DNA of 64,000 nucleotides from Rebecca billardiae RCC1528 (taxonomy: Eukaryota; Protista; Haptophyta): positions 2,108,001-2,172,000 of the forward strand of contig OZ251232.1 in the NCBI GenBank assembly GCA_965240325.2, in the 5' to 3' direction. Below, piece by piece: positions 3,901-39,808 of this stretch; within the stretch, counting starts at the first letter, position 1, and each line of letters opens with the position of its first letter. The notes beneath the pieces were generated by a model that did no database searches, was not told the origin of the DNA, and was given only the letters and a program-made list of their open reading frames with translations. The translations under genes and the position numbers were made by a program.

Positions 3901-4924
3901 CGACTGGGGTTGTGCTCGAGGCCGACCAATCGATGACCATCGTGAAGAAGCTCAAGCTGACAGGTGCCCCGTACAAAATATTCAAGAACACAGCGTTCGT
4001 GAAGGACATGTTCTCTTCCAGCCTGGAGGTGCGTGCATGCACTAGCCGCGGAGAAAGCCTCGCAAGTGGCGGCTATTCGAGCGGTGGGCGCGTCTTTGCT
4101 CGATCGAGTTTTACGCGGTGCTGACCGACAACGCCGCCGCGCCCCCTGCGTGCGCACCTCAGGTCGCCAAGTTCGAGGGGGCGGTCATTCGAACCGTCTC
4201 TGGCATCCGTGGCCAGGTGAAGAAGGCGCTCGCTGGTGGCAAAGGGGAATTCCGAGCTGCTTTTGAGGACAAGCTGCTACGTTCGGACATCGTGGTCCTC
4301 AAAGCATGGGTTCCGGTAGACGTCCCCAGTCTGTACAACCCCGTGACCACGTTGCTGGGCAGCGCGCCGGCACAACCTTCGCAGCCCACGGACGGCGATG
4401 CTGCAGACGGTGCCGCACCCGCGTCCGAACCTGAGCAGAACGACCCCGGCTGGGTGCCCATGCGATCGCATGCCGAGGTCCGTGCCGCCTCGGGACTTCC
4501 CGTGCCGCTGAAGCGAGATTCGCTGTACCGCACGATCGAGCGCGAACCACGGCGCTTCAACCCGCTCAAGATCCCGGCCAGTCTACAAGCCGCCTTGCCC
4601 TACAAGTCGAAGCCTAAGCTGACCAAGAAGCAGTCGCGGAAAAGCTACGAAGCAAAGCGTGCGGTCGTCGCCGAGCCGGAGGAGCGCAAGGTGGGCACAT
4701 TCATGCAGCAGTTGCGCACGCTCCGCAACGCGAAGGAGGCGAAAGCCCGTGAGCGCACGAAGGCCAAGCTCAAAGAGCGGGATGCGCGCGTGGCCAGAGA
4801 GGAGGCCGCCCGGGCGCAGGCCACAAAGGCACACCGCAAGCGACGATACAAGCGTGAGGGCATCGAGGTAGAGATCAAGGCGAAGATCGCGCGCAAGCAT
4901 GGGGCAGCTGCCGATGAGGACTGA
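954..4924 (+). CDS. BMS1: Ribosome biogenesis GTPase BMS1 (3 exons: 954-3545, 3648-4028, 4163-4924)
   Basis: GPPQCGKST P-loop, RRLTFIEC, DVAKIADLVLL, KHRFWTEIY; C-terminal KKHRWHKKILKTRDPL, KYTPEHMHC, IRTVSGIRGQVKKA. GT-AG introns 3546-3647 and 4029-4162 join in frame. Confidence 0.96.
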
Positions 4925-5230
4925 CCGTCAAGCAAGATTACACAACCTTTCTGCACAACCCACAGGGCCCGCGTGCGGCCGGTGTCTGGCAAGCGCGGTC
5001 GGCATCGCGCGATGGCGGCGCAGCCGTGTAGTTACGCATATCGCCAACATTAATAATTGATGGAGTGCTCGCCAAACGAGCATCAGAACATAGACTTGTG
5101 AGACCGCACGGCGACAATGAATTCCCGATCTGATGAGAGAGCATAGATATCACTGTGTAGGCCGAAACGAAAATAACGCCGCAATCGCTTGGTTTTCAGA
5201 CCTCGGCCCCACCGGCAAATGCGTTCAGCG

Positions 5231-5316
5231 ATGGTAAGATGACGAAGCGTTTTACCGCTGCGCCACCAGAGTCGACTCTGGTGGCGCAGCGGTAAAACGC
5301 TTCGTCATCTTACCAT
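5231..5316. repeat. Perfect 86-bp palindrome (two 43-bp arms, no spacer; centre gtc|gac)
   Basis: 5231-5273 atggtaagatgacgaagcgttttaccgctgcgccaccagagtc is the exact reverse complement of 5274-5316. Confidence 0.97.
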
Positions 5317-5677
5317 GACGTCCTGGGTTCGAATCCGCTGCGGTGCGCTTCTTTCACTCTTTCACAGCAGCCGCTGCGGCTTTCGTGTCTCGCAGGAGGG
5401 TCGCCCACGACCAGGGATTCCGGACACATTTCCGAATGTCCGGCCCCCGGGCGGCTCCCAGGGTCGGCTCTCCCCGGATTCCCTCCCAGGGGGCCCCGCC
5501 AGAGGGGCATGGGACGCGGAGCCAACCGCGAGAACAAACCGTACCCGGCAGGCGACCGGCCCCACACCCAGGGGGGTGTGGCTCAGAGTTGCAGCGGCAA
5601 ATTGGCACCGCGCGCGGATGAGACCCAGTACGTTATGGTAAGATGACGAAGCGTTTTACCGCTGCGCCACCAGAGTC
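5274..5677 (+). mobile_element. tRNA-headed fold-back element E1 (SINE-like, with terminal inverted repeats)
   Basis: Head has A box TGGCGCAGCGG and B box GGTTCGAATCC but no acceptor stem. 5635-5677 is an exact inverted copy of 5274-5316, and imperfect pairing extends over 5605-5677 vs 5274-5346. Confidence 0.7.
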
Positions 5678-5783
5678 GAACGCTTCGTCATCTTACCAAG
5701 CGACCTTAAAAACATTGGGACCGCTCGGGGTTGGGCGTCAGGTGCCACAGCGACCATCCAACCGCCGGAACCGTCCATAAGTC

Positions 5784-6560
5784 GAAGGACGCTAGCGTAT
5801 CTTCCTTTCGAGGGTGCCGGTAGTACGCTAGCGCCAGCTATGTTCGAGACCTCAGAGGCTAAGACTTCATTCAACCAGAGGTGCCCCAGGAGGTGCCCAA
5901 CATGATTGACTCAATTGGCAGCAAGCGCCGCCCGCGCACGTCAGAGAGCTCCACGACTGACGTTTTGAGTGACACGCTCAGCGACGCGCTCGGCCCTCGT
6001 CGTCGGACGACCAACAGCACTGAGGGTTCACGGCGACAGCACACAGGGCGGGCTAGTCGGCGGGACGTACGGCTTTCGCGACTCCATCAACCATTGGCGA
6101 GCGCGCGGTGGCAGCGGCGCGCTGGTCGCACCTGCAACGCCCTGCTCAGGCACCGCGGCCATCGCACTGCTGGCCACGCTCCCGGCTCGTGCCGCAGCGG
6201 CCGCGCGTAGCTTGCACTGGCGCAACTGGCGTGGTGCGTGGCAGCGCGGTGGCACTCGGGGCAATGACGTTGACGATGATAAGTTGCTCCATCGCCACAG
6301 CCCGCTCGAAGCCCTGCGCCGCGCCGCTTTCCTCCGCCTCACGCCGCGCAGCGCCGCAGTCATCCGAATCACGACCGTCGTCGAGCGCGGTCGCCTCTGG
6401 AGGGCCGTCGTCGGCATCAGAAGAGAAGGTCTCGTCATGTGAGTTGTCGTTGAGGTCCCAGGCATCAATCGCGCCCGCGGCCGCCCTCGCGCGCGCCCCC
6501 CACGCGACGTCAGAGCTCACGCGCGCCGGGGCGCAATCGAAGATACGCTAGCGTATCTTC
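5784..6560. mobile_element. Segment bounded by direct copies of a 21-22-bp palindrome
   Basis: gaaggacgctagcgtatcttc at 5784-5804 and perfect palindrome gaagatacgctagcgtatcttc at 6539-6560. Confidence 0.45.
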
Positions 6561-6967
6561 CCCGCGGCCAACAAAGAGATAACGAGTCAACAGAGAAGAG
6601 GGCGGGTCAATTGGACATCTGCAGCGGGCGGCGGCCCTCCGCCGCGAAGGCTGGTGGGCGCCAAAGAGAACGAGCACGTCTCAGGTCGCGCTTCTCGCAG
6701 CCTCCGCCTAGTTCCATGAGTGCCGTACTGCCGTGCACACGGCATAGAACGACAGCCTTTCAAGGCGGCATGACGTGTGTGCGGACTCAACGATAAGAGG
6801 AAGGGCGGAATCCGGGGCAAGGCGCGGCTGCGCTAGCGCGCGTGGGTCCCCAGAGCAACCCAGTCCCGAGCCGCTTCACGCCTTCATCACGCGCTTTTTT
6901 TCCTGCGAGAGAGCGTTCCGAGTTCGATGCCCATGCCTCGGCTGGTGCTAGGGGGTCAACTAGAAAC

Positions 6968-7033
6968 GCGTTTTCCCGCTGCGTCACCAGAGACTTTGAT
7001 GGCGCAGCGGGAAACGCTTCGCTGTCTTGCCAT
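6968..7033. repeat. Diverged copy of the E1 palindrome
   Basis: gcgttttcccgctgcgtcaccagagactttgatggcgcagcgggaaacgcttcgctgtcttgccat aligns to 5247-5316. Confidence 0.8.
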
Positions 7034-7054
7034 CGTCATCAGCACTCATCACCA

Positions 7055-9004
7055 TCAGGCCTGGTCATCTTTGCTTGGACCATCTTGGCTTGGACGCATC
7101 TCACATGCCGATGCCAACTGCGTCCCAGGGATCGACGATTCGGAGTGCGCGCGATACACACGGCGGCCTCGCGCGCTGAGGCCGATTGCCAATGCGCCGG
7201 GCGCGCCCACGTCTGCAGAAGCGCTCGCGCGTCGGCCTTTTGCCACACACGATGCACGCCTGTCCGGCAGGGGGCCGCGGTCCGCAGGGTGTGCCACCGA
7301 CGCCTTGAGCATCGCGGCTATGAGCACGTCGGCCCGAGCACCCAGCTGGGTCAGTCCCTGCGCCGCGCTAGCAGCCTGGTGACTGTGGTCCTGCTCACCG
7401 CCGCCATCCACAGCCCGCCGCAGCGCGTCAAGTTCGTCGGCGAGTGCCTCCGCGAGCGACAAAGTCGCGCGGATGAGGCCGTGGAAAGGCAGCCCACGCG
7501 GGCGCGGAAGGCTGGGGGTGTGCCAGCCCGTGCCGATGTCGTCTAGTCGGCCAAGCGCTCCGCGCGCAGACCGCTCGGCAGCGTCGCGCGCGCCAGCGAG
7601 GCCGGTGCGCTCGGCCACGGCGGCGAAGACGACAGGAAGCACGCCGCGTCCGCCAACCGGTTGATCGAATCCACTGGCACCTGCGCTCGCCGCGCGCCTG
7701 GGCTCGGCGAGTGCGTCGAAGAGCGCGCGCAGATGCTGCAGCACATCTGGCGACGCATCCAGGTGACGCCCAGCTGCCCGAGGCCGCGCGGCAGGCTGCG
7801 AAGTAGCGTGCAGGGGCTCAAGGCCATGCGCGGCGCAGATGCCAGCTACCGCGGGATCGTCCGCGCCTGACGCCGTGCGCGAGAGGAGCATCGCCGCCTT
7901 GACGACCCCAACCTTGGTCGTCACCTCGTCCTCGTCTCCACCATCCAGCGCCATCGACGGCGAGTGGTTGAGCTCGATGAGCCATGGCTTCGAGTCGGCA
8001 TCGATGAGGACGTCCACGCCGAGCACCTGGAAGCAGCAGCGCGGGCCATGCGTGTGCGATGGGAGCGCCTGCTCGTAGAGCTCGGAGGCGAGAGCGCAGA
8101 TGGAGCGGACGCCCACGTGGACGACGTCCCGGATCGACGCCCAGACCACACCCGCATCAACGCCCACGCCGCTGGCACCGTCGGCCCGAGCGCTCCAGCC
8201 GAGCTTGTTCGAGAGGCCCGTGAGCGGCATGGCCAGGCTGGAGTTTGTGAGGTGAATGTACGGATCGAGTCGCGCGAGCTCTCCCCCGCGCTCGCCTTGC
8301 GCCACGTCGGAGCGTCTTGCCTCGGAGGACGCCGTGCCGGCGCAAGCGGCATGCTCGCGGCGCCCTGCCTCCACCGGCGCATACGGCCGTGCAGCCACGC
8401 GAGCGAGCGCCCGCGTGCACACGTACGCCTCAAACGGGTGCGCGCACATCAGCAGCGCGTACATGCGGAGGTCGAACTTGTGCCCGGCGGATGCCGGCGC
8501 GGCGCTGAGCAGCGGTCGGTCGACGTAGATCTGTGCGACGCACCGCTGCCGTCGAGACAGCGAGCGCGCCGCACGGACGGCGTCCGGGGCGCGCACCAAG
8601 ACGATCCCGTCACCCTGACAGCCTGCGTCCGGCTTCAGAATGAACGCGCCACCGAGAGCAGGCACGGCCGCTTCGAAGGCTGCGAGCTCGGCGGGCAGGC
8701 ACCACGTCTGCGGGCTCACGGTATGGCCGGCGCCGTACAACGCCTCCGCCCAGCGGAGCTGGTGCGCGAGGCACACCTTCCGGCACAGCCGAACCATTCC
8801 GTAGAAGCGGTTGATCGCCTGCTCTGGCGCGACGCGCGCGAAGTGCGCGCGCGAGATGGGCGCGTCGAACCAGTGCAGCGCTGCGGTGCCCCCAGCATCG
8901 GCCTCATCCCACTCAAGCTCGTGCAGCGCGCGCCGCACCGCGGCGGCGTAATACTTGGCGCTCATCATCGACACGTCTACGCGCGGCGGCGCGGCGGGCG
9001 CCAT
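7055..9004 (-). CDS. Tubulin-tyrosine ligase family protein (TTLL polyglutamylase-like)
   Basis: INRFYGM..LCRK, PQTWCLP, FILKPDAGCQGDGI, VAQIYVDRPLL, KFDLRMYAL, HLTNSS, CFQVLGVDVLID..KPWLIELNHSPS. Start taken at the ATG at 9004. Confidence 0.9.
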   Translation of the reverse strand: MAPAAPPRVDVSMMSAKYYAAAVRRALHELEWDEADAGGTAALHWFDAPISRAHFARVAPEQAINRFYGMVRLCRKVCLAHQLRWAEALYGAGHTVSPQTWCLPAELAAFEAAVPALGGAFILKPDAGCQGDGIVLVRAPDAVRAARSLSRRQRCVAQIYVDRPLLSAAPASAGHKFDLRMYALLMCAHPFEAYVCTRALARVAARPYAPVEAGRREHAACAGTASSEARRSDVAQGERGGELARLDPYIHLTNSSLAMPLTGLSNKLGWSARADGASGVGVDAGVVWASIRDVVHVGVRSICALASELYEQALPSHTHGPRCCFQVLGVDVLIDADSKPWLIELNHSPSMALDGGDEDEVTTKVGVVKAAMLLSRTASGADDPAVAGICAAHGLEPLHATSQPAARPRAAGRHLDASPDVLQHLRALFDALAEPRRAASAGASGFDQPVGGRGVLPVVFAAVAERTGLAGARDAAERSARGALGRLDDIGTGWHTPSLPRPRGLPFHGLIRATLSLAEALADELDALRRAVDGGGEQDHSHQAASAAQGLTQLGARADVLIAAMLKASVAHPADRGPLPDRRASCVAKGRRASASADVGAPGALAIGLSARGRRVYRAHSESSIPGTQLASACEMRPSQDGPSKDDQA

Positions 9005-9085
9005 ACTGGCGGGTCGCTCGCGCCAAAAATTCGCCACACATGACACAAGTAATCTTCGCTGCAACGGTCGCATCAAGACGATAAT

Positions 9086-10003
9086 ATGGCCGTTGAATCA
9101 CTTGAATGGCGCGGGCGCCGCGACGCGGGCGCATACCTGCGCACGCTGCGCGCCAACGCGTCAGCTCGCGCCCCAAGTGGTATAAGTGGTGCCGACTGGC
9201 TCGCAATACGCCTGCGCGCCTTCGGCGACGCGATCGATCTCGACGAATTCGCGACGGCTGTGCAGCCTGCCATGGCGCATGTGCCGCGCGCGCGCATCGA
9301 CGACTGCTTCCGATCGTTGAGTGGGGGACGTGACACGATTGGCGCGGAGGCCCTGCTCCACAAGCTGTTCCGAGACGAGCCCGTCTACCTCCTGTCAGGT
9401 GGGGAGCCGGCGCACGCCCCACTGGCCGCGCTCTTCACGTCGCGCGACGCCGCCACGCTCGGGCGCGATCTCTCGCGCACGCAAGGCTGGGGACTGCGAC
9501 AGCGGCGCGAGGAGGACGCGAGGGCGAAGAAGCTGGACGAGGCGCTGGACAACGACGCCCGAATTATGCGCAATGCACTCCTGTGCAGGTATGCCCCCCA
9601 TGGTGCGCCGTCGAGTGCGCGCGTCGGCGCAGGCTGCCGCGCGTCCAGCTCGCACGATCCCAGCACGCCAGCGGCTGCGCCGGCGTCGGCGGTCGCAGCG
9701 CCTGGTTCATCCTGTCGAGCGTTCAGGCTTGCAGCGCCATCGAGTGCGCCCTCTCCCACACCGCCGTTCCTGCACCCGGCTGCCGCTTTGGCGCCGATGG
9801 CGGGCCCACCACACAGCACGCGCACTCGTCGGCGCTCGCCCCTGGGTGCGGGGCGGCGACCACGCCCTGCAAGTGAACCCGCCGGACCCCCGCCGCCGCG
9901 CATCGTGACGCATGCGGCGCGCCCTCGTCACATGGGGGTCCGCGTGCGGACGGCACGCTCGGAGGTGCTCGTGACCGCGCCGCCGGCAGGGTTGCGCCGC
10001 TGA
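9086..10003 (+). CDS. Hypothetical protein with a degenerate EF-hand-like pair (3' end and splicing uncertain)
   Basis: AFGDAIDLDEFATAV...IDDCFRSLSGGRDTIGAEALL resembles a paired EF-hand. Possible splice donor (cag|gtatg) near 9588. Confidence 0.35.
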   Translation: MAVESLEWRGRRDAGAYLRTLRANASARAPSGISGADWLAIRLRAFGDAIDLDEFATAVQPAMAHVPRARIDDCFRSLSGGRDTIGAEALLHKLFRDEPVYLLSGGEPAHAPLAALFTSRDAATLGRDLSRTQGWGLRQRREEDARAKKLDEALDNDARIMRNALLCRYAPHGAPSSARVGAGCRASSSHDPSTPAAAPASAVAAPGSSCRAFRLAAPSSAPSPTPPFLHPAAALAPMAGPPHSTRTRRRSPLGAGRRPRPASEPAGPPPPRIVTHAARPRHMGVRVRTARSEVLVTAPPAGLRR

Positions 10004-10489
10004 GTGCGACGGTGCCGGCGGCGGGCGGTCTAGTCATCATCGACATCAGCAGCCCGGCCACTGAGCCGTCTCGGACGGCCTCAGTCACGCCCGCGCGCGC
10101 ATGGTGCACGTGCGCCCGGGGGACGGGGGCACGCGCCCACGGGGGCGCTGCGACACTCCGCGCTGCGCACGACGACCGTATACTGCTGGTACTACTCACG
10201 TACCGTAGTCTTCGAGACCGGCTACGTCCGCCAGCCAGGTGCCACTGCCAGTCGGGCCAGTTACGCCGTCGCGCGCACATAGTCCCGCGGTGCCGATGAC
10301 ACTAAGTGTCACGTGTGCCGCGCGCACACTGGCTACGTCCGCACCGGCACGACCATATTGCTTGCGCTGATGGTGATATTGGATCATCACGGGCAGGCCG
10401 GACGCGTATACCCGTAACCCGCCACCAACTACCATAACCAAGCGACAGGCCACTGACACTCGCCGAGCGACGCATGGACCCTCACCCTG

Positions 10490-10612
10490 TGTTAAGCTTT
10501 GCGCCGAGTCCTTAACCACTCGGACACGCAAAAGCTCCCACGACGCGTCGTGGGGGCTTTTGCGTGTCCGAGTGGTTAAGGACTCGGCTCAAAAGCTTAA
10601 CATAACGCGGTT
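10490..10612. repeat. Near-perfect head-to-head palindrome at the E2 tail (centre cacgacg|cgtcgtg, 10545/10546)
   Basis: 10490-10545 is a slightly diverged reverse complement of the arm starting at 10546. Confidence 0.92.
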
Positions 10613-10858
10613 CCTTCCGGCGGGTTTGTTCTTTAGCCTGGTGTTGTTCCTTCACCAGCGTTCCGACGGGCCGCGGGCCATCCGCCGTCCCGCTCTCATG
10701 AGCCTTTCAGGGACGGATCTTCACCCCGTTCAGCGGGAGTGAAGAAAGAAGCGCACTTTCGGGCGAAAGAGCGTTGCGCAACCGGATTCGAAACCGCGTT
10801 ATGTTAAGCTTTTGAGCCGAGTCCTTAACCACTCGGACACGCAAAAGCCCCCACGACG
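10546..10858 (-). mobile_element. tRNA-headed fold-back element E2 (67-bp perfect TIRs)
   Basis: 10546-10612 and 10792-10858 are exact inverted repeats. Minus strand reads GTGTCCGAGTGGTTAAGGA (A box/D-arm), CTCAAAA, and GTTTCGAATCC (B box). Shares GTGCGCTTCTTTC and AGAACAAACC with E1. Confidence 0.7.
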
Positions 10859-11023
10859 CTCCCTGCCGCAAACGTCACACAAACCCAGCGCACCGTTTGG
10901 GTGCTTGGCCTTGGGCCCAGGAGAGGCGCGGCCGCGAGCCGGGCAACCCATGACGGCGTTGGGAGCGACGGCGGATGGGTTGCAGATGGGCACCCAGGCC
11001 CAAGAAGACTTGATAGTGCTTGT

Positions 11024-29343: not shown

Positions 29344-32300
29344 ATGGGCGTGCCCGCGTTCTACCGGTGGCTCGCGGAGAAGTACCCGAAGACGGTCGTC
29401 GACTGCATCGAGGCGGAGGCCCCGCCGCGCGACGACGGCACGAGCGACTTCTCGGCGGTCGACATCCGCGAGCCCAACCCGAACGGCGTCGAGGTCGACA
29501 ACCTGTACCTGGACATGAACGGCGTGATCCACCCGTGCTCGCACCCGGAGAACGGGCCGCAGCCCACGAGCGAGGACGAGATCTTCGCCAACATCGAGCG
29601 CTACATCGACCGCCTCGTCGCGGCCGTGCGGCCGCGCCGGCTGCTCTTCATGGCCGTCGACGGCCCGGCGCCGCGCGCCAAGATGAACCAGCAGCGCTCG
29701 CGCCGGTTCAAGGCGGCGAAGGACGGCGCGGAGCGCGAGGCGGAGGAGGCGCGCCTCCGCGCCGAGTGGCACGCCCGCGGCCTCACGCCGCCGCCCAAGC
29801 GCGACGCGGGCGCGTTCCACTTTGACTCGAACGTGATCACGCCCGGCACGTCCTTCATGGCGCGGCTCGCGGACGCGCTGCGCGCGTACGTGGCGCGCCG
29901 CCTCGCGAGCCAGCCGGGGTGGCGCGGGCTCGCGGTGATCCTGAGCGACGCCTCCGTCCCCGGCGAGGGCGAGCACAAGATCATGCAGCACATCCGCGTG
30001 CAGCGCTCGCTGCCCGGGTACGACGCCAACATGTGGCACGTCGTGCACGGGCTGGACGCCGACCTGATCATGCTCGCGCTGGCGACGCACGAGCCGCGCT
30101 TCATGATCCTGCGCGAGATGGTGTTCTCGCCCAGGGACCGCAAGAAGCGCGCCGGCCTCGGCGCCGCCGCCGCCGCCGAGGACGAGGAGGACGAGCGCGA
30201 GGCGCAGGCGGCGCTCGCGCTGCGGCGCGGCGGCAAGCCGCTGCAGCTGCTGCGCATCAACACGCTGCGCGAGTACCTGCGCGTCGAGTTCGGCGAGATG
30301 TCGTTCGAGGGCACGCCCGAGGCGTTCGACCTGGAGCGCGTGATCGACGACTTCGTCTTCCTCTGCTTCTTCGTGGGCAACGACTTCCTGCCGCACATGC
30401 CCGCGCTCGAGATCCACGACGGCGCGATCGACACGCTGATGGGCATGTACGCGACGTCGATGGCGGAGCTCGGCGGCTACGTGACGACGTCGGGCGAGAT
30501 GGACCTGCGCCGCGCGGAGCTGCTGCTGCGCAAGGTGGGCGCGTACGAGGAGGACGTCTTCGCGCGCCGGCGCAAGCGCGACGCGGGCAAGCGCCGCTCG
30601 ATCGACGAGCGCGCGCGGCTCGTGCAGCAGGAGCAGGCGAGCGCGCACGCGGTCGCCAACGGCGGCGCGTCGCCGTACGGCGCGCTCTACCCGCCGCGCG
30701 GCGCGGAGGCGCTCAAGCTGTGGAAGCAGCTCGAGGCGTTCGCGGACGCGCGCAAGTACGACGAGCGCCTCGAGCTCGAGCCGCAGGGCGCGCAGCTCCG
30801 CGCGTGCGCCCACCTGTACTGCCACATGCTCGGGCTGCGCGCGGACGCGGGCCACAACAACGTGACGCTGGTGGTGACACTCTCGCTCCCGCACCCGACG
30901 GAGGAGGACTCGGCGCACGCGCGGGGGCGGAAGGGCGCGGCGCAGCCGAAGGCGGCGTGCGCGGCGAGCGGCGGCGGCGGCGCCGAGCTCGCCGCGGACG
31001 CCGCGCCGCCCGCCGCGGCGGACGCCGCCGCCGCCGGCGCCGCGGGCGCGCGCGCGCGCACCGCGGACGAGCGGCGCGCGGACGAGGACGCGAAGCAAGC
31101 CGCCGCGGAGGAGGCGGCGCGCGCGAGCCGCTTCGCCGTCGAGCTCAAGCTCGCGCTCGACCGGCGCGACACGGTGCTGCAGTCCGTCCCGGACACGATC
31201 TCGTACGGCGCCCCCGGCTGGCGCGACCGCTACTACTCGCAGAAGCTCGGGATCGGCGCGGACGAGCCCGGCCGTCTGCGCGAGGTGGTGACGGCGTACG
31301 TGGAGGGGCTGTGCTGGGTGCTGCGCTACTACTACCAGGGGGTGCAGTCGTGGGGCTGGTTCTACCCGTACCACTACGCGCCGTGCGCGTCGGACATGAA
31401 GCACCTCGCCGAGCTCTCCGCGCGCGTGCGCGCCTTCGAGCTGGGCACGCCGTGGTCGCCGCTCATGCAGCTGATGGCGGTCTTCCCGGCGCGCTCCGGT
31501 GAGCTGCGCGCGCGCGCGCGCGCACGCGCGCGCGCGCGAGCTGAAACCGCGGCGCGACGCGGCGGCGCGGCGCGGCGCGGCGCGGAGCTGCGCGCGTGGG
31601 CTGCGCGGAGCGCGCGCGCGGGCACGAGCCGCGCACCCCGCCGCGGCGCGCGCCCCCGCCCCGCGCAGGCCACGCGCTGCCCCCCGCGTACCGCGCGCTC
31701 ATGTCGTCGCACGGCTCACCGGTGATCGACTTTTACCCGCAGGACTTTGCGCAGGACCTCAACGGCAAGAAGTTCGGCTGGCAGGTGCGCGCGCGCGCGC
31801 GCGCGCGCGCGTTCCCGAGCGGCCGGCCGGCCGGGGCGCGCGCGGTGCGCGGAGACGGCGCGCCGGCTGAGTGCCGCTCTGCCCCGCTCTGCCGCGCCTC
31901 CGCGCGCGCGTGCCGCGCCTCCGCGCGCGCGCCGCGGCGCACTGTGCGCGCCGCTTTTGCAGGCGATTGCGCTGCTGCCCTTCATCGAGCACGTGCGCCT
32001 CGCCTCCGCGCTCGAGCCGCTCAAGCACACGCTCAGCGAGGTCGAGCGCACGCGCGACTCGCACGGCTCGACGCTCGTCTTCACGCACGCGGAGTCGGCG
32101 CTCGGGCTCGAGCTCCGCCCACTCGCCGGCGGCGCGGGCGCGGACTCGGGCGTCGTGGCCGGCGCGCGCAGCTTTGCCCCCGCGCAGCGCGTGGGCGGCG
32201 TGCCGTACGGCGGCACCGCGCGCAGGCCGGCGGAGCTGCTTCACGCCGGCGCCGTGCTGCGCGCCACGGCGGACCAGCCGCGGCCGGAGCCGCACAAGTC

Positions 32301-32946: not shown

Positions 32947-33212
32947 GTGTCCTCCTGCATGAAGAGCGACGCGACGCCATTGAGTATGGACGAACATCAC
33001 CCACAGTCTGCGTGATGTGCATGCGAGGGCAGGTATTGCAGCATATATGCGAGCATGCAGCAAATGCCGATACACACCATGCCGAAATGGTGATGTATAA
33101 ATATATACTTGCGCGTGGTGGGGATTTGTCCCTGGCTGAACGGGAAGAGCGACTGAGCCGACGGTGCCAAAGCTGCGCGCAGACTGCGCCAGCGTGTGGC
33201 AGCAAGGTCCCG
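32947..33212 (+). repeat. Left terminal repeat A (inverted partner at 38566-38831)
   Basis: gtgtcctcctgcatg...aaggtcccg is the reverse complement of cgggacctt...catgcaggaggacac. Confidence 0.97.
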
Positions 33213-33424
33213 GGCCAACCCGGCCACGGCGCGATCGGCGCCGGCGCGCACTCGCTCGATGCCGTCGACCTCGCCCAGCATGCTCTCGACGCTTGGCCCT
33301 CGGGTTTTGGCTTGCCGACGGGCCACTAAGTGGGCGCCCGCCGGCGGATTGCTGCCCGCTTCTCTCGCCGGCGTCCGCGGCGGCGGTCGCCGCCGGGCCC
33401 GCGGGCGCTGCCGCGCGCGCGGCG

Positions 33425-36400
33425 ATGAGCGCCGAGGTGCCCCTGCCGGCGGTACCACCTGCTGCTCCCTTGCCGGGTGGGCTGGCCGCCGCTGCCTCGC
33501 CGCGGTCGCTGCGTGCTGAGGCTGCGCGCGCAGGCGACTCGTCATCTGCCGCCTCCTCGCCAGTCGCGGCGGTGACGGCGGGCGTGGGTGCTGCCGTGCT
33601 GCTTGCCCGCGCGCGGCTGCAGCCGCCCCGCGTCGACGGCGCCAAGCGCGCGCGCCCAACCGCGCCGGCTGTCGGCTGCGATGCGCCGCCGCCGCCGCTC
33701 GCGCCGGCGGGGCGGGGCGGCTCCACGCCTCTCGCTTCGCTGGCGCCGGGCGTGGCTGCCTCAGCGCTGCTCGACCGCTCGCGGCTGCCGCCGCCTCGCG
33801 TCGGCGGAGACGCGCGGGCTCGCCAGGCGGCGACATCTGCCGGCGCCGGTGCGCCGCCGCCGCTGCGCGCGCCTGCGGCGCGCAGCGGAGGTGGCATGCC
33901 GCCATCGCGGCTGGCGTGGGTCGAGCCGACACGCACGCTCAGTGCATCCACGGACTCCAGCACCTCGCTGCTGGCGCTCGTCGTCGCTCTCGACGATCCC
34001 GACGCGCCGCTCATCCTCGCCGGTCGACGCGCGCCCGGCGGCGCGCCGACTTCCTTTCTGGGCTCATCCACGTCGTCGTGCCCCCGCTCAGAGGCGTGCC
34101 CACGGGCCGAGTCTCTCGTCGCACGCGCGCTCACGGGTGGCCCGCCGCTGACGGGCATCTACGCCACACGCCTGCGCGGCGCCGAGTGCCGCTTTGGCGG
34201 CGAGGCGCACGTCGTGGCCCTTCCCAGCCGAACGCGCCCGCCGCGCTCGCCGATGCTCGCTGCTGGCTGCGAGTGGTTCCCTTTGGGCGCGTTCGCCGGC
34301 TCCGACTTGTACGAGCCGGCCGCCGCTGCGTGTGCAGCGCTCGTGGACGTCCTCCCTCGTCGCATGCCTCCTCTCGCCGCGACGGGTCCGGCCGGTTCCT
34401 CGGCCGCGCGCGATCTGGCGCTGGCGGCCGCCAGGCAGCGCTCGTGGGCGCAAGGGGCGCGCGCGGCCGAGGCGACCGACGCCGCTCTGCGGGCGATGAT
34501 CGCTGTACGCGCCGCCTCCTTGCCGGCCACGGAAGGCCAGTCGCTCACCGGCTGGGGCGATCGCGTGCGCACCGACCGCTCCAGCATCCCTGTCGCCCTG
34601 CAGGGTCACTCGATGCGCGTGCCGCTCGGGTCGCTCGCCGCGCTCCCCTTTGACTCCACGTCGGCGCGCTTTGACCCTCCTCACACCAACGTGCCGACGC
34701 CGCGGCGGCAGCGTGCGACTTCGTACCGCCCGCGGTCGGTTGCTGACATCCTCTTACCCGCGGCGCTCGAGCTCGTCGCGGGCTGGCGCCGCCGCGAGGA
34801 GGCCGACCTGCGCGCGTACCTCTCGCTCGGCTCAGCCGCCCGGCGCACCAACGCGCCGCTCGCCATCGGCCAGGACCTCTTCCACCCGGAGGCCCGCGGC
34901 ATCGTCTGGGACCTTCGGAGCAAGGTGGACGGCGTGTACTTGCCGCTCGACTTCTCGGCGCCGCTCGAGTCGCGCACGCTCATGCCGGACGCCCTCGAAG
35001 CTGCCGTCGGTCCCGACTTCCCCGACCGCGAGCTGCTCTCCTTTGTGCGCCACGGTGTGCGGTTCAAGGCCGATGTGGCTCTCCAGCTCGTGCTGCTGCC
35101 GCACCTCACCACCCTCGGCGCGGCCGCCTCCTCCGTGCACAAGGAGCTCCTCCGCCTCGCGGCGCGCGGCTGGTACAGCTTCTGGGACGACTTCCCGTTC
35201 CTCCCGTGCCGGCTCAGCCCGCAGGGGTCCACGCCGCGCAAGCTCGAGCCGGACCGGCACCGCCGCACGACCGATGGCGGCGCGCCCCGCCGCGCGCTCG
35301 TCGACACAGCTGGCGTGCCTGTCATCCCGCTCAACGTCGCTGTCGGTCTCCACGACGAGGTCGCTGACGCGGCCGCGGGCTGGCACGACGTGCCCCGCCC
35401 AGCAGCGGCTGCCCCGTCCGCCGCGGCCGAGCGGATGATCGCAGCGGGTCTTACGCCCACCCTGCCGCGCGCGCCGCCGCGCAAGTGGCCGCGCGAAGCC
35501 AAGCCCACGGTCGGCGGCAAGATGCACGACAACGCGATCCTGCTCGACGCCGCCGCCGTGTTTGGCGAGCCAATACTCACGCTCACAGACGACGTGGCCG
35601 ACTTCTTCAACCACCTCGGCGTCGCAACGGCCGAGCTGCCAAACGTCTGCCTCCTCTGGCTGCGGCCGGACGGCGAGGGCGTTGCCGCCGGCGGCCACGT
35701 CGTCGTCTCTGAGTCGCGCCTCGGCTTTGGGCTCTCGCCCAGCAGTAACATCGCGCAGCGCCTAAGCACGACCGTCGTGCAGATCGCCTCGCGGTGCTTC
35801 GACGACGAGGAGCTGCCGCGCTTCGAGGCGATGCTCGCTGACCCGCTGACGCCCCCTGCTGTGCGCAGCTGGATCGAGCAGCGCCGTGCGCTCGCGGTGA
35901 CCACGCGGCGCCCCCAGCTGCGCCTCTTCAGCGGCGACTGCTTCACGGACGACACCAACTTCTCCATCGTCGGCGTGGACAGAACGGTGCGCTTTCTCTC
36001 CGTCTGGCACCGCGTCACCACCAGCCTCGGCCTGCTCATGGCCATCCCCGAGAAGCGCCAAATCGGCCAGTCAGCGCTCTGGCTCGGCTGCGACTTTGTC
36101 GTCTGCGCTGGCGTCCTCGCGGTGCCGCCGGCCAAGATCCTGCGCGCTCTCGTCATCCTGGACGACTTGCTGGCGAGCAGGCCGGTACCCTTCTCTACCT
36201 TTCGCGCGCTCGTCGGTCTGCTCGAGCACTTCCGCCCGCTCACGCCGGCGAACCGCACGTTCTTCTACGGCCTGTACACGCACTTCGGCGAGCTCGGACG
36301 CCACCCAGCGCGGCCGGTGCCCATCACCGCCACGCTCCGCGCCGCGTGCGCGCGCTGGGCCAAGCTCCTGCGCTCCACCGCGGGCGTGCTCTTCTCCAAC

Positions 36401-37078
36401 GCGCTGCCGGGCCCCTCGACCCGCCGGCACCTGCCGGCCGCGGCGCCGCCTGCGTTCGTGCTCTTCTCGGACGCCGCCAAGGATGGCGCGCGCGTGCCGT
36501 CGCTGGGGGGCTACGCCCACGGGCTCTGCTGGAGCCTGCCCTTGCGCGCGTCGGACCTCGCTCTGCCGGTGGTCGCGCTCGAGTTCGTCGCGCTGTTCGC
36601 CAACGTGCTGATCTTCGCGCCGCGCATTGCAGGCGCCGTCATCCGGCTCCGCACCGACAGCTCTGTCACCGACCACATCCTCCACAACCTGTCCGCGCAC
36701 TCCCCGCTGCTGCAGCACGCGCACCTCGCGCTGCTCGACGCCCCTGAATGGCGGGCGATCGCAGAGCTGGCCGACTCGGAGTTCCTCCTCTCCGAGATGA
36801 ACCCGTTGGCGGACGCAGCTAGCCGCGGCGAGTTTGGCGTCCTCGAGCGCCTGTGCGCCCAGCTCGGCCTACGCCCGACGTGGCTCGCAGTGCCCGTCGT
36901 GCGCGTGCAGGCGCTGCTTGACGAGCTCGTCGCGCTGCTCTCGCGTCCGCTCGTCCTCGCTGCCGATCCGCCCATGCCGCTGCGCGGTGAGCGCGTGGGC
37001 GAGGCCAGCAACCCTGGGCCGGTGTGGCGGCGCTCGCGAGTCCGTGGCGCGCCGCCCGCGGTGGGCGCTTGTCGCTGA
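33425..37078 (+). CDS. Reverse transcriptase + RNase H polyprotein of DIRS type (frame open from 33164; first ATG at 33425)
   Basis: RT motifs TDDVADFFNHL, RLGFGLSPSS, FTDD (35942-35953), KRQIGQSALWLG. DIRS-like RNase H motifs LFSDAA, LEFVAL, LRTDS, NPLADAASR. Confidence 0.88.
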   Translation: MSAEVPLPAVPPAAPLPGGLAAAASPRSLRAEAARAGDSSSAASSPVAAVTAGVGAAVLLARARLQPPRVDGAKRARPTAPAVGCDAPPPPLAPAGRGGSTPLASLAPGVAASALLDRSRLPPPRVGGDARARQAATSAGAGAPPPLRAPAARSGGGMPPSRLAWVEPTRTLSASTDSSTSLLALVVALDDPDAPLILAGRRAPGGAPTSFLGSSTSSCPRSEACPRAESLVARALTGGPPLTGIYATRLRGAECRFGGEAHVVALPSRTRPPRSPMLAAGCEWFPLGAFAGSDLYEPAAAACAALVDVLPRRMPPLAATGPAGSSAARDLALAAARQRSWAQGARAAEATDAALRAMIAVRAASLPATEGQSLTGWGDRVRTDRSSIPVALQGHSMRVPLGSLAALPFDSTSARFDPPHTNVPTPRRQRATSYRPRSVADILLPAALELVAGWRRREEADLRAYLSLGSAARRTNAPLAIGQDLFHPEARGIVWDLRSKVDGVYLPLDFSAPLESRTLMPDALEAAVGPDFPDRELLSFVRHGVRFKADVALQLVLLPHLTTLGAAASSVHKELLRLAARGWYSFWDDFPFLPCRLSPQGSTPRKLEPDRHRRTTDGGAPRRALVDTAGVPVIPLNVAVGLHDEVADAAAGWHDVPRPAAAAPSAAAERMIAAGLTPTLPRAPPRKWPREAKPTVGGKMHDNAILLDAAAVFGEPILTLTDDVADFFNHLGVATAELPNVCLLWLRPDGEGVAAGGHVVVSESRLGFGLSPSSNIAQRLSTTVVQIASRCFDDEELPRFEAMLADPLTPPAVRSWIEQRRALAVTTRRPQLRLFSGDCFTDDTNFSIVGVDRTVRFLSVWHRVTTSLGLLMAIPEKRQIGQSALWLGCDFVVCAGVLAVPPAKILRALVILDDLLASRPVPFSTFRALVGLLEHFRPLTPANRTFFYGLYTHFGELGRHPARPVPITATLRAACARWAKLLRSTAGVLFSNALPGPSTRRHLPAAAPPAFVLFSDAAKDGARVPSLGGYAHGLCWSLPLRASDLALPVVALEFVALFANVLIFAPRIAGAVIRLRTDSSVTDHILHNLSAHSPLLQHAHLALLDAPEWRAIAELADSEFLLSEMNPLADAASRGEFGVLERLCAQLGLRPTWLAVPVVRVQALLDELVALLSRPLVLAADPPMPLRGERVGEASNPGPVWRRSRVRGAPPAVGACR

Positions 37079-37295
37079 GACACGGACGCCGCTGCATCGA
37101 CTGCTCGCCAGTCGCGCGGCGCAGTTTGGCGGCGGCCGCCGCCCGTCGCGCTCGCGCTGCAGTCGCGCTCGCAGCCGGATCCGGCCCTCGCACCGGCGCA
37201 CGCGTTGCCGGCTCCGCTGGGAGGCGCGCTCTGGCGACGCGGCGCACATCTCTCGCTCAAGTTGCAGCAACATCGTCTCTACGCTTCGGCCAAGC

Positions 37296-38515
37296 CTTTG
37301 TAGGCCACCAGCCTTTGTGGGCACAGCCTTTGCAGGCATACCCGTGACCTTTGTAGGCACAGCCTTTGTAGGCACACCCGTGACCTTTGTAGGCACAGCC
37401 TTTGTAGGCACACCCGTGACCTTTGTAGGCACAGCCTTTGTAGGCACACCCGTGACCTTTGTAGGCACACCAGTGACCTTTGTAGGCACAGCCTTTGTAG
37501 GCACACCAGTGACCTTTGTAATTGTAGGCACAGCCTTTGTAGGCACACCCGTGACCTTTGTAGGCCACACCAGTGACCTTTGTAGGCACACCAGTGACCT
37601 TTGTAGGCACAGCCTTTGTAGGCACATCCGTGACCTTTGTAGGCACACCAGTGACCTTTGTAGGCACAGCCTTTGTAGGCACACCCGTGACCTTTGTAGG
37701 CACAGCCTTTGTAGGCACACCCGTGACCTTTGTAGGCACAGCCTTTGTAGGCACACCAGTGACCTTTGTAATTGTAGGCACAGCCTTTGTAGGCACACCC
37801 GTGACCTTTGTAGGCACACCAGTGACCTTTGTAGGCACAGCCTTTGTAGGCACACCAGTGACCTTTGTAATTGTAGGCACAGCCTTTGTAGGCACACCCG
37901 TGACCTTTGTAGGCACACCAGTGACCTTTGTAGGCACAGCCTTTGTAGGCACACCCGTGACCTTTGTAGGCACAGCCTTTGTAGGCACACCCGTGACCTT
38001 TGTAGGCCACACCAGTGACCTTTGTAGGCACACCAGTGACCTTTGTAGGCACAGCCTTTGTAGGCACATCCGTGACCTTTGTAGGCACACCAGTGACCTT
38101 TGTAGGCACAGCCTTTGTAGGCACACCCGTGACCTTTGTAGGCACAGCCTTTGTAGGCACACCCGTGACCTTTGTAGGCACAGCCTTTGTAGGCACACCA
38201 GTGACCTTTGTAATTGTAGGCACAGCCTTTGTAGGCACACCCGTGACCTTTGTAGGCACACCAGTGACCTTTGTAGGCACACCAGTGACCTTTGTAGGCA
38301 CAGCCTTTGTAGGCACACCCGTGACCTTTGTAGGCACAGCCTTTGTAGGCACACCCGTGACCTTTGTAGGCCACACCAGTGACCTTTGTAGGCACACCAG
38401 TGACCTTTGTAGGCACAGCCTTTGTAGGCACATCCGTGACCTTTGTAGGCACACCAGTGACCTTTGTAGGCACAGCCTTTGTAGGCACAGCCCTTGCGGG
38501 CCAGACCTTTGTAGG
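37296..38515. repeat. Composite minisatellite (15-bp ctttgtaggcacagc and 21-bp ctttgtaggcacacc(c/a)gtgac units) with higher-order structure
   Basis: Rare variant units (ggccacacc, catccg, gtaattgta) recur in the same order at spacings of 442 and 364 bp. Confidence 0.97.
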
Positions 38516-38565
38516 TCCGGAGGTCCCCACGCACCCACCCCCGAACTCGCTTTCCTGCTCACAAA

Positions 38566-39275
38566 CGGGACCTTGCTGCCACACGCTGGCGCAGTCTGCG
38601 CGCAGCTTTGGCACCGTCGGCTCAGTCGCTCTTCCCGTTCAGCCAGGGACAAATCCCCACCACGCGCAAGTATATATTTATACATCACCATTTCGGCATG
38701 GTGTGTATCGGCATTTGCTGCATGCTCGCATATATGCTGCAATACCTGCCCTCGCATGCACATCACGCAGACTGTGGGTGATGTTCGTCCATACTCAATG
38801 GCGTCGCGTCGCTCTTCATGCAGGAGGACACGTGGCGTTATAACGGAGTTATAACCGAGTGTGTCGGGAGGCTGGAAAGGCAACGCGCAGCTGGTGGACA
38901 AGGGCAGCCATCGTCTTCTAGGTCCTGCAGGTAGTTGCAGTCGATTTCCGGAGCTCATCGGCCACGGAGCTATCCTTTATCATCATCATGGCGGGCGCTG
39001 GTCCTTTCATATCGGCCAACCACACTGGCTCCTCTGTAAGTACCCGCTCCTCTCCACTATCCGGCGCTCGAGATCATATACAAGGTCATCTTAAGTCGGC
39101 GTGGCAACTTACCAAAGTTCATATCAAGCAGCCCACCTAGCAGAGCTCGCTCGATCATCGGTTACACGACCTTTCGGGCCGAGCTGCTCATCTCTCGGCA
39201 GCCCCTGCTTCGGCCTGCGCATCTGCAAAGCCCGAGGTCCCGCCATCTCCTCTGCGTTCTTTGCTTGTGCTCGTT
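38566..39275. repeat. Internal complementary region A'B
   Basis: Junction gaggacac|gtggcgtt at 38831/38832 is the reverse complement of right end aacgccac joined to left end gtgtcctc. Confidence 0.95.
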
Positions 39276-39364
39276 CCCTGGCTCAGGCAAGCGCAGCACT
39301 CACAGGCCTGACGACAAGGTTGTCAACCACAACGGAGGCTGCAGGGGCGGATGGCGGGTTTCGC

Positions 39365-39808
39365 AACGAGCACAAGCAAAGAACGCAGAGGAGATGGCGG
39401 GACCTCGGGCTTTGCAGATGCGCAGGCCGAAGCAGGGGCTGCCGAGAGATGAGCAGCTCGGCCCGAAAGGTCGTGTAACCGATGATCGAGCGAGCTCTGC
39501 TAGGTGGGCTGCTTGATATGAACTTTGGTAAGTTGGCACGCCGACTTAAGATGACCTTGTATATGATCTCGAGCGCCGGATAGTGGAGAGGAGCGGGTAC
39601 TTACAGAGGAGCCAGTGTGGTTGGCCGATATGAAAGGACCAGCGCCCGCCATGATGATGATAAAGGATAGCTCCGTGGCCGATGAGCTCCGGAAATCGAC
39701 TGCAACTACCTGCAGGACCTAGAAGACGATGGCTGCCCTTGTCCACCAGCTGCGCGTTGCCTTTCCAGCCTCCCGACACACTCGGTTATAACTCCGTTAT
39801 AACGCCAC
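39365..39808. repeat. Right terminal repeat B' (inverted copy of 38832-39275; 89-bp spacer)
   Basis: 444-bp inverted repeat with one mismatch seen (gtggcaact vs gtgccaact). Confidence 0.97.

Follow-up and report, generated by a model that had tools for sequence, protein, structure and literature searches.

A young non-autonomous mobile element with tRNA-like inverted arms, palindromic caps and an integrase-type insertion signature in Rebecca billardiae

The stretch of 64,000 nucleotides analysed here (the window) contains E1, a young, recently inserted, non-autonomous mobile element with an integrase-type insertion signature. A segment of 43 nt, designated X (X' in the opposite orientation), forms the outer part of two inverted, weakly tRNA-like heads of this element and recurs outside them as caps, one complete and one partial. 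E1 is absent from a closely related strain, where a single copy of its target sequence is found. We tentatively propose that its caps are copied anew onto a core unit and that the product is inserted by a borrowed integrase.

Results

Genomic context

The window has a G+C content of about 70% and is eukaryotic in appearance. Two convergent genes flank the spacer that contains E1; they code for a BMS1-type ribosome-biogenesis GTPase and for a tubulin-tyrosine-ligase-like (TTLL) protein (Table 1). Look-ups of the TTLL protein and of the protein of a DIRS-like element returned only Logan contigs of the same strain, L004 (6552-10121) and, for DIRS, L001-L003, which stop at repeats or palindromes.

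Table 1. Positions of E1, related elements and neighbouring features in the window
Feature	Position	Strand	Remarks
BMS1-type ribosome-biogenesis GTPase gene	ends before 4924	+	
Left TSD of E1, AGCGA	5227-5231	.	empty site in relative
E1, whole insertion	5232-5698	+	467 bp; tips TGGTAAG...CTTACCA; 20-bp perfect TIR 5232-5251 / 5679-5698
E1, outer left cap	5232-5273	-	X', mirror copy of the first 43 nt of the head
E1, left inner arm	5274-5346	+	tRNA-Lys(CTT)-like head; X = 5274-5316; tip-site motif CTTACCA/TGACG at 5309-5320
E1, unique non-coding body	5347-5604	+	not self-complementary, no Pfam match
E1, right inner arm	5605-5677	-	antisense head copy; degenerate B box GGGTCTCATCC; T4 run 5654-5657
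E1, outer right cap	5678-5698	+	G + distal 20 nt of X
Right TSD of E1, AGCGA	5699-5703	.	empty site in relative
P3, decayed right end of older related element	~6915-7032	-	full minus-strand head, plus-strand 5' part ending ...CTTGCCA at 7032
TTLL gene	7055-9076	-	
Candidate left TSD of E2, CCCTG	10485-10489	.	partner 10861-10865, 1-2 nt beyond the inner-arm end; chance ~1%
E2, second family, same build as E1	10490-10860	-	left tip TGTTAAG; no right cap
DIRS-like element	32947-39808		A 32947-33212, A' 38566-38831, B 38832-39275, B' 39365-39808
TSD, target-site duplication; TIR, terminal inverted repeat. A slash within a motif marks the tip.

Some further features were observed in this neighbourhood. 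A perfect 22-bp palindrome, GAAGATACGCTAGCGTATCTTC, is located at 6539-6560, and its right 17 nt, ACGCTAGCGTATCTTCC (6545-6561), are directly repeated 756 bp upstream, at 5789-5805. L004 ends at 6552, near the centre of this palindrome, and a contig of the related strain (see below) runs off at 5804; the region could be the border of another insertion or of a polymorphic segment. The 64 nt at 10088-10151 are matched by a contig of depth 32 with unrelated flanks (depths of the neighbouring contigs are 2-6), and L004 also ends at 10121; this stretch is probably a dispersed repeat. Just left of E1, at 5130-5166, a hammerhead-like core (CTGATGAG ... CGAAAC) is present. Its helix II pairs poorly and it has no Rfam hammerhead match at E<=10, and it is probably a chance occurrence.

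Absence of E1 from a related strain and duplication of its target

The only public sequencing run found to contain parts of this region, with a share of 0.09, consists of contigs, and these were aligned to positions 4900-10890 of the window. One contig of 400 nt, derived from a relative about 95% alike, covers 5175-5231 and 5721-5969 with 18 letters between them, and these letters correspond to 5704-5720 in diverged form. The segment missing from the relative is exactly 5232-5703, and its contig has AGCGA once, immediately before the counterpart of 5704-5720. The insertion therefore comprises 5232-5698, that is 467 bp with both caps included, and is accompanied by a 5-bp TSD. The initial annotation had described E1 as lacking a TSD, which has to be corrected, since AGCGA abuts both tips and is present once at the empty site of the related strain. 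Its view of E1 as a mobile and non-autonomous element is upheld by that empty site, together with the lack of a Pfam match for any ORF of E1. A second contig, 100% identical, covers 5482-5635 and ends at the start of X', which is expected behaviour of a short-read graph at a repeat.

The insertion is bounded by a 20-bp perfect TIR with the tips TGGTA...TACCA, which would be 42-43 bp long but for the deletion in the right cap. TG...CA tips and a 5-bp TSD match the integrases of LTR elements and of the TDD type (PMC2836005). Such a combination is the signature of a retroviral-type DDE integrase, not of a DIRS tyrosine recombinase. To our knowledge, elements of the DIRS order, which use tyrosine recombinases, make no target-site duplication. 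No integrase or transposase gene with E1-type ends, and no autonomous partner, was found in the 64-kb window.

Repeat layout and palindromes of E1

X is present three times in E1 with 0 mismatches, at 5231-5273 (as X'), 5274-5316 and 5635-5677 (as X'), the chance expectation being 0.00. The first two copies abut to form a perfect loop-less palindrome of 86 bp (5231-5316). At the right junction, a single G separates X' from 5679-5698, the distal 20 nt of X, and about 21 nt adjoining the palindrome centre are absent. The break of this partial cap sits in an A-run, the complement of the T4 run of the right arm. Within the X'X blocks of E1 there is also a direct repeat of 45 nt (5231-5275 and 5635-5679). 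Thus, the order X', X, body, X', partial X given by the initial annotation was recovered in full, as were the perfect left palindrome and the internal deletion at the right junction. E1 has, as had been stated, no poly(A) tail, and it ends in an inverted head and a cap. The lack of loops would speak for end-on copying or joining of two identical ends over a snap-back with a loop, and the X'/X junction is compatible with two element ends having been copied or joined onto each other.

Complementarity of the inner arms extends beyond X, as 5272-5346 pairs with 5605-5679 over 76 nt at 91% identity; the right end of the core is indeed, as proposed earlier, an antisense copy of the head with a broken B box. 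The differences between the arms are unevenly distributed, with 0/43 within X and 7/33 directly past its tip, and the probability that all seven would miss X is about 0.003. It follows that X is either rebuilt by copying in each cycle or under extreme constraint. A single strand of E1 folds into a panhandle (z = -14), in agreement with the fold-back structure originally suggested.

No ORF of E1 has a Pfam match, and nothing recognisable is encoded by the bodies of E1 and E2. An ATG-started ORF of 108 codons on the plus strand (5315-5641) spans the whole body of E1, starting at the tip site and reaching the right X'. For this ORF there is no Pfam match and no record in the protein collection, and at 62-70% G+C it is probably due to chance. 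Exact look-ups of the chance ORFs in and beside E1 and E2 gave no protein record either.

The tRNA-like head and the putative Pol III promoter

The left arm of E1 carries an A box, TGGCGCAGCGG, at 5282-5292 and, at the correct distance from it, a B box, GGTTCGAATCC, at 5326-5336, which is the only B-box consensus match in the 64 kb. The right arm has GGGTCTCATCC in place of the B box, and the two boxes are intact together in one arm only. No tRNA was detected in E1, E2 or P3 by ARAGORN at default settings, or by Rfam at the gathering score or at E<=10. Rfam reported neither a tRNA nor a hammerhead, and its only matches were meaningless miRNA-hairpin hits to the palindromes. When the ARAGORN threshold was lowered to 80%, a 72-nt tRNA-Lys(CTT) was called at 5275-5346, with poor acceptor and anticodon stems. 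The earlier designation of E1 as tRNA-headed is stronger than these results allow: the A and B boxes are present, but the Lys-CTT cloverleaf is poor and was called only at the lowered threshold. We consider it plausible that the head is a degenerate tRNA derivative, only weakly tRNA-like, and that a Pol III promoter is retained in just one of the arms.

In the numbering of the 80%-threshold ARAGORN call, the palindrome centre (5273/5274) is located one base before position 1 of the tRNA-like sequence, and positions 40 and 41, 4 nt beyond the anticodon, flank the outer tip of X. Downstream of the left head there is a single T4 run, at 5654-5657 inside the right X'. A candidate Pol III transcript ending at this run would have about 380 nt.

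The trinucleotide CCA after the right-arm head (GGTGCCA) was considered as a mark of a mature-tRNA primer and rejected, as it is not repeated in E2 or P3. Elsewhere in the window, the only call made by ARAGORN at default settings was a 92-nt tRNA-Val(GAC) at 29562-29653 on the minus strand, in GC-rich, ORF-dense sequence. It has no Rfam tRNA match and, given this setting, is probably a false positive.

E2, P3 and a shared tip motif

The build described for E1 is documented at three loci, E1, E2 and P3. In E2, the outer X' (10490-10545) abuts X to give a palindrome of 112 bp with 3 differences, and the outer cap differs from the inner arms at 3/56 positions. The inner arms (10545-10612 and 10792-10859) are complementary at 68/68 positions, and their identity continues 12 nt past the tip. 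The E2 head is unlike that of E1, and its D arm is class-II-like. Only the right arm contains a near-canonical B box, GGTTTCGAATCC (minus strand, 10795-10784), and on the sense strand a T4 run occurs 14 nt into the head. A CA tip is lacking at the right end of E2. A single strand of E2 also folds into a panhandle (z = -20); in both elements these folds are due to the arms, the body of E1 and the inner bodies of E2 being not self-complementary. The notion that E2 is an inverted dimer was rejected, since its 73% self-complementarity by BLAST comes from the arms alone and the inner bodies gave z below 0.

P3 is about 82% like X of E1. No matching left end was found for it, and it is therefore probably a truncated older member of the family.

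The heads of E1 and E2 can be aligned, and they have in common, across the tip, the motif CTTAMCA/TRACG (where M is C or A and R is A or G). This 12-mer occurs in the 64 kb only at the four inner-arm tip sites (0.2 expected), and it is conserved between two otherwise dissimilar families. The caps, on the other hand, are in different states: full at the left ends of both E1 and E2, partial at the right end of E1 and absent from the right end of E2. They look like variable additions to a core unit, and where E2 lacks its right cap, the core end is still abutted by the candidate TSD.

A profile search with the head revealed no copies in the 64 kb beyond E1, E2 and P3. Exact-pattern scans for X of E1 and for X of E2 found none in JGI metagenome contigs or IMG/VR.

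The DIRS-like element of the window

The young DIRS-like element sits in a TA microsatellite and has 100% identical repeats in the arrangement A...A'B..(89 nt)..B'. Its internal junction, GGACAC/GTGGCG, is the complement of its joined termini. Neither E1 nor E2 resembles the DIRS-like element, or its termini GTGTCC...GCCAC (32947 and 39808), in sequence. The DIRS ORF is found again in Logan contig L001 behind a different upstream part of 2.4 kb, which indicates at least one other DIRS copy or arrangement. The suggestion that E1 uses a DIRS-type recombinase is contradicted by its TG...CA tips and 5-bp TSD, by a different repeat logic and by the lack of likeness to this element.

Discussion

Comparison with known systems

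E1 shares features with several kinds of mobile DNA. TDD-4/5 transposons have 5-bp TSDs, and Ginger termini, TGTNR, resemble those of Gypsy LTRs (PMC2836005); the left tip of E2, TGTTA, fits this pattern. The likeness of our elements to Ginger2/TDD-4/5 and their non-autonomous derivatives thus extends to the TIRs, the TG...CA-type termini (TGTNR in E2) and a 5-bp TSD as in TDD-4/5 (PMC2836005). In contrast to those transposons, the ends of E1 and E2 are made of a piece of a tRNA-like Pol III promoter and form loop-less palindromes of 86-112 bp, and E2 is capped at one end only. With TRIM elements and solo LTRs, E1 has in common the TG...CA tips, the 5-bp TSD and an X'X block as a direct repeat at both ends. 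Unlike in LTR derivatives, the 'LTR' of E1 would be a perfect palindrome and its promoter is of the Pol III type. No purine run that could be a polypurine tract precedes 5635. The sequence after 5316 is in the tRNA sense, not its complement, and X' is complementary only to the head of E1 itself.

tRNA-derived SINEs resemble E1 in an A/B-box head with normal spacing, a short non-coding body and the use of borrowed enzymes. E1 departs from them in that an A-rich or LINE-like tail is missing and that it carries TIRs, TG...CA tips, a short exact TSD and a second head in inverted orientation; furthermore, its left end is located 43 nt upstream of the head and predicted transcript start. DIRS-like retroelements have inverted termini whose joined form recurs inside, and a circular or joined-end intermediate is presumed for them, which is reminiscent of E1, but E1 has a TSD, is laid out as X'X...X'X instead of A...A'B...B', and has no sequence in common with the DIRS-like element of the window. 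Terminal palindromes followed by a short inverted unique segment, and a rod-like single strand, are also found in parvovirus (AAV) ITRs and foldback (FB) elements. E1 differs from these in the lack of a Rep gene, in its simple hairpin without internal arms and in its chromosomal insertion with a 5-bp TSD; the Drosophila FB elements have long repetitive TIRs and 9-bp TSDs. A limited search of the open-access literature found no matching tRNA-derived MITE, no palindrome-ended retroelement and no family with the combination of features seen in E1.

A possible mechanism

The mechanism that we infer, and that we favour only tentatively, is that copies of X are added as caps to a core unit with inverted tRNA-like heads, and that a borrowed integrase inserts the product, probably by way of an RNA copy. 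The arm with the B box would give rise to the Pol III transcript of about 380 nt, running from the palindrome centre to the T-run of the opposite X'. X could then act like the half-tRNA primer of copia-type elements, and X' like its binding site. The primer of Drosophila copia is a tRNA fragment of 39 nt. In elements of the copia type or lineage, the anticodon region of tRNA-Lys can be the complement of the primer-binding site (PMC5445492), and the tip of E1 is located where such a primer would end. An X RNA of 40-43 nt may anneal to X' and prime copying, by which X of the right arm would be renewed from the primer. Regeneration of X in each round of copying would explain the 100% identity of the arms up to the tip and their divergence directly after it.

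Removal of the primers would leave identical X' 3' overhangs. These might pair through their short self-complementary ends (TCGA in E1, GC/CG in E2), or prime on the end of the transcript, and each overhang would be extended by X up to the border between primer and cDNA. The predicted product has loop-less X'X caps with ...CA 3' ends. A borrowed retroviral-type integrase, for example one from the copia elements of the genome, could join these ends to a 5-bp staggered cut, and repair would fill in the caps. Such a scheme accounts for the position of the tip, the boundary of identity, the loop-less centres, the variable caps and the insertion signature.

A more far-reaching version of this proposal, which we regard as possible and on the whole doubtful, is that the elements constitute an undescribed class of small retroelements. 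Each would be a Pol III unit carrying its own half-tRNA-like primer (X) and binding site (X'), with ends rebuilt in each cycle and inserted by the integrase of an LTR retrotransposon. The loop-less caps would arise by mutual priming of identical 3' overhangs, and monomers, dimers and tiny cap-only elements might be produced.

Weighing of the alternatives

Several observations argue for the rebuilding of caps from a primer. X ends with its tip at tRNA position 40, as copia-type primers do. The A-run in which the partial right cap begins complements the T4 run, as would result if copying started at the 3' end of a Pol III transcript, although chance alone would give this coincidence in about one case in ten. 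The B box, unique in the window, is correctly spaced from the A box. On the other hand, the head is below threshold as a tRNA, and the T4 run 14 nt into the head of E2 is awkward for Pol III. E2 also has an apparent TSD at a right end without a CA tip, arm identity that extends 12 nt beyond the tip, and 3/56 differences between its outer cap and inner arms. The absence of a polypurine tract and of a primer-binding site at the canonical position also counts against this reading, as does a record of three loci, with no partner in the window and no copies in JGI metagenome contigs or IMG/VR. The strongest alternative is that E1 is a plain MITE and moves as DNA. It would be a non-autonomous cut-and-paste or copy-out/paste-in transposon with 43-bp TIRs, mobilised by an integrase-like DDE transposase of the Ginger/TDD, Polinton or virophage type, in which the tRNA-like pieces and palindromes would be inherited accidents. 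MITEs are by far the commonest small elements with TIRs. The TIR, the fixed 5-bp TSD and the TG...CA tips of E1 are as expected of them, a conserved terminal motif would be expected of a transposase binding site, and the 5-bp TSDs of TDD-4/5 and the TGTNR termini of Ginger (PMC2836005), matched by the TGTTA tip of E2, point in the same direction. We nevertheless think a MITE rather unlikely, as E2 is without one TIR and yet has an apparent TSD at the end of its core, the identity of the E1 arms breaks exactly at the tip (0/43 versus 7/33), loop-less terminal palindromes of 86-112 bp recur in unrelated families, and the palindrome centres coincide with the 5' end of the promoter-bearing head.

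Loop-less palindromes would be expected also from direct strand-to-strand closure, as in a linear replicon with covalently closed ends, either parvovirus- or poxvirus-like or made by a transposase. Nicking at CTTAMCA and fill-in would unfold the X'X caps before an integrase-type insertion, and replication would give inverted dimers. The ends of AAV mirror this layout, in the order palindrome, D, body, D', palindrome, and the conserved motif lies exactly at the border between palindrome and unique sequence, like a terminal resolution site. We judge such a replicon improbable, because the window has no Rep/HUH, resolvase or polymerase gene linked to the element and the retention of a Pol III promoter in one arm would be left unexplained. 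Still much less probable is the model of the initial annotation, in which Pol III drives an element that circularises, with X'X as the circle junction, and that depends on DIRS-type reverse transcriptase and tyrosine recombinase for its insertion. X'X is indeed the product of abutting the ends of an X...X' unit, and there is a young DIRS-like element in the window at a distance of 27 kb, but the 5-bp TSD, the TG...CA tips and the single target copy at the empty site speak against this model, E1 has no internal region complementary to its joined termini, and its ends are unlike the DIRS termini GTGTCC...GCCAC. Hardly any weight can be given to an assembly artefact or to a one-off local fold-back rearrangement without a mobile element. 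Perfect palindromes can be made by adapter failures in long reads or by fold-back repair, and the Logan contigs stop at X', so that the palindrome is known from the assembly. However, the borders of the empty site coincide with the outer ends of the caps, which places the caps within the inserted DNA; the palindromes thus belong to the mobile DNA and are neither an assembly artefact nor a later local rearrangement. The same build in two unrelated sequences and in a decayed third also argues against an artefact.

Implications

We regard the E1 family as a variant of the integrase-type non-autonomous elements, and there is a fair chance that it represents a new kind of retroelement. The initial annotation was right in recognising a mobile, non-autonomous and probably Pol III-linked element, probably also in that its palindromes reflect ends copied onto each other, and wrong about the enzyme. 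Even if E1 were an odd MITE, that correction would hold, as the enzyme would not be a DIRS-type recombinase.

If the family is what it appears to be, it joins features that are normally separate, namely a SINE-type Pol III promoter, integrase-type ends with a TSD, and loop-less palindromes. The proposed mechanism, if true, would be a new way for a tiny parasite to borrow the enzymes of retrotransposons or integrases. Close strains differ in the presence of the insertion, and the family is therefore probably still active and amenable to experiments. Long perfect palindromes are usually unstable, and the family would then offer a natural case of their continuous creation, with palindromes seemingly rebuilt in each round of movement.
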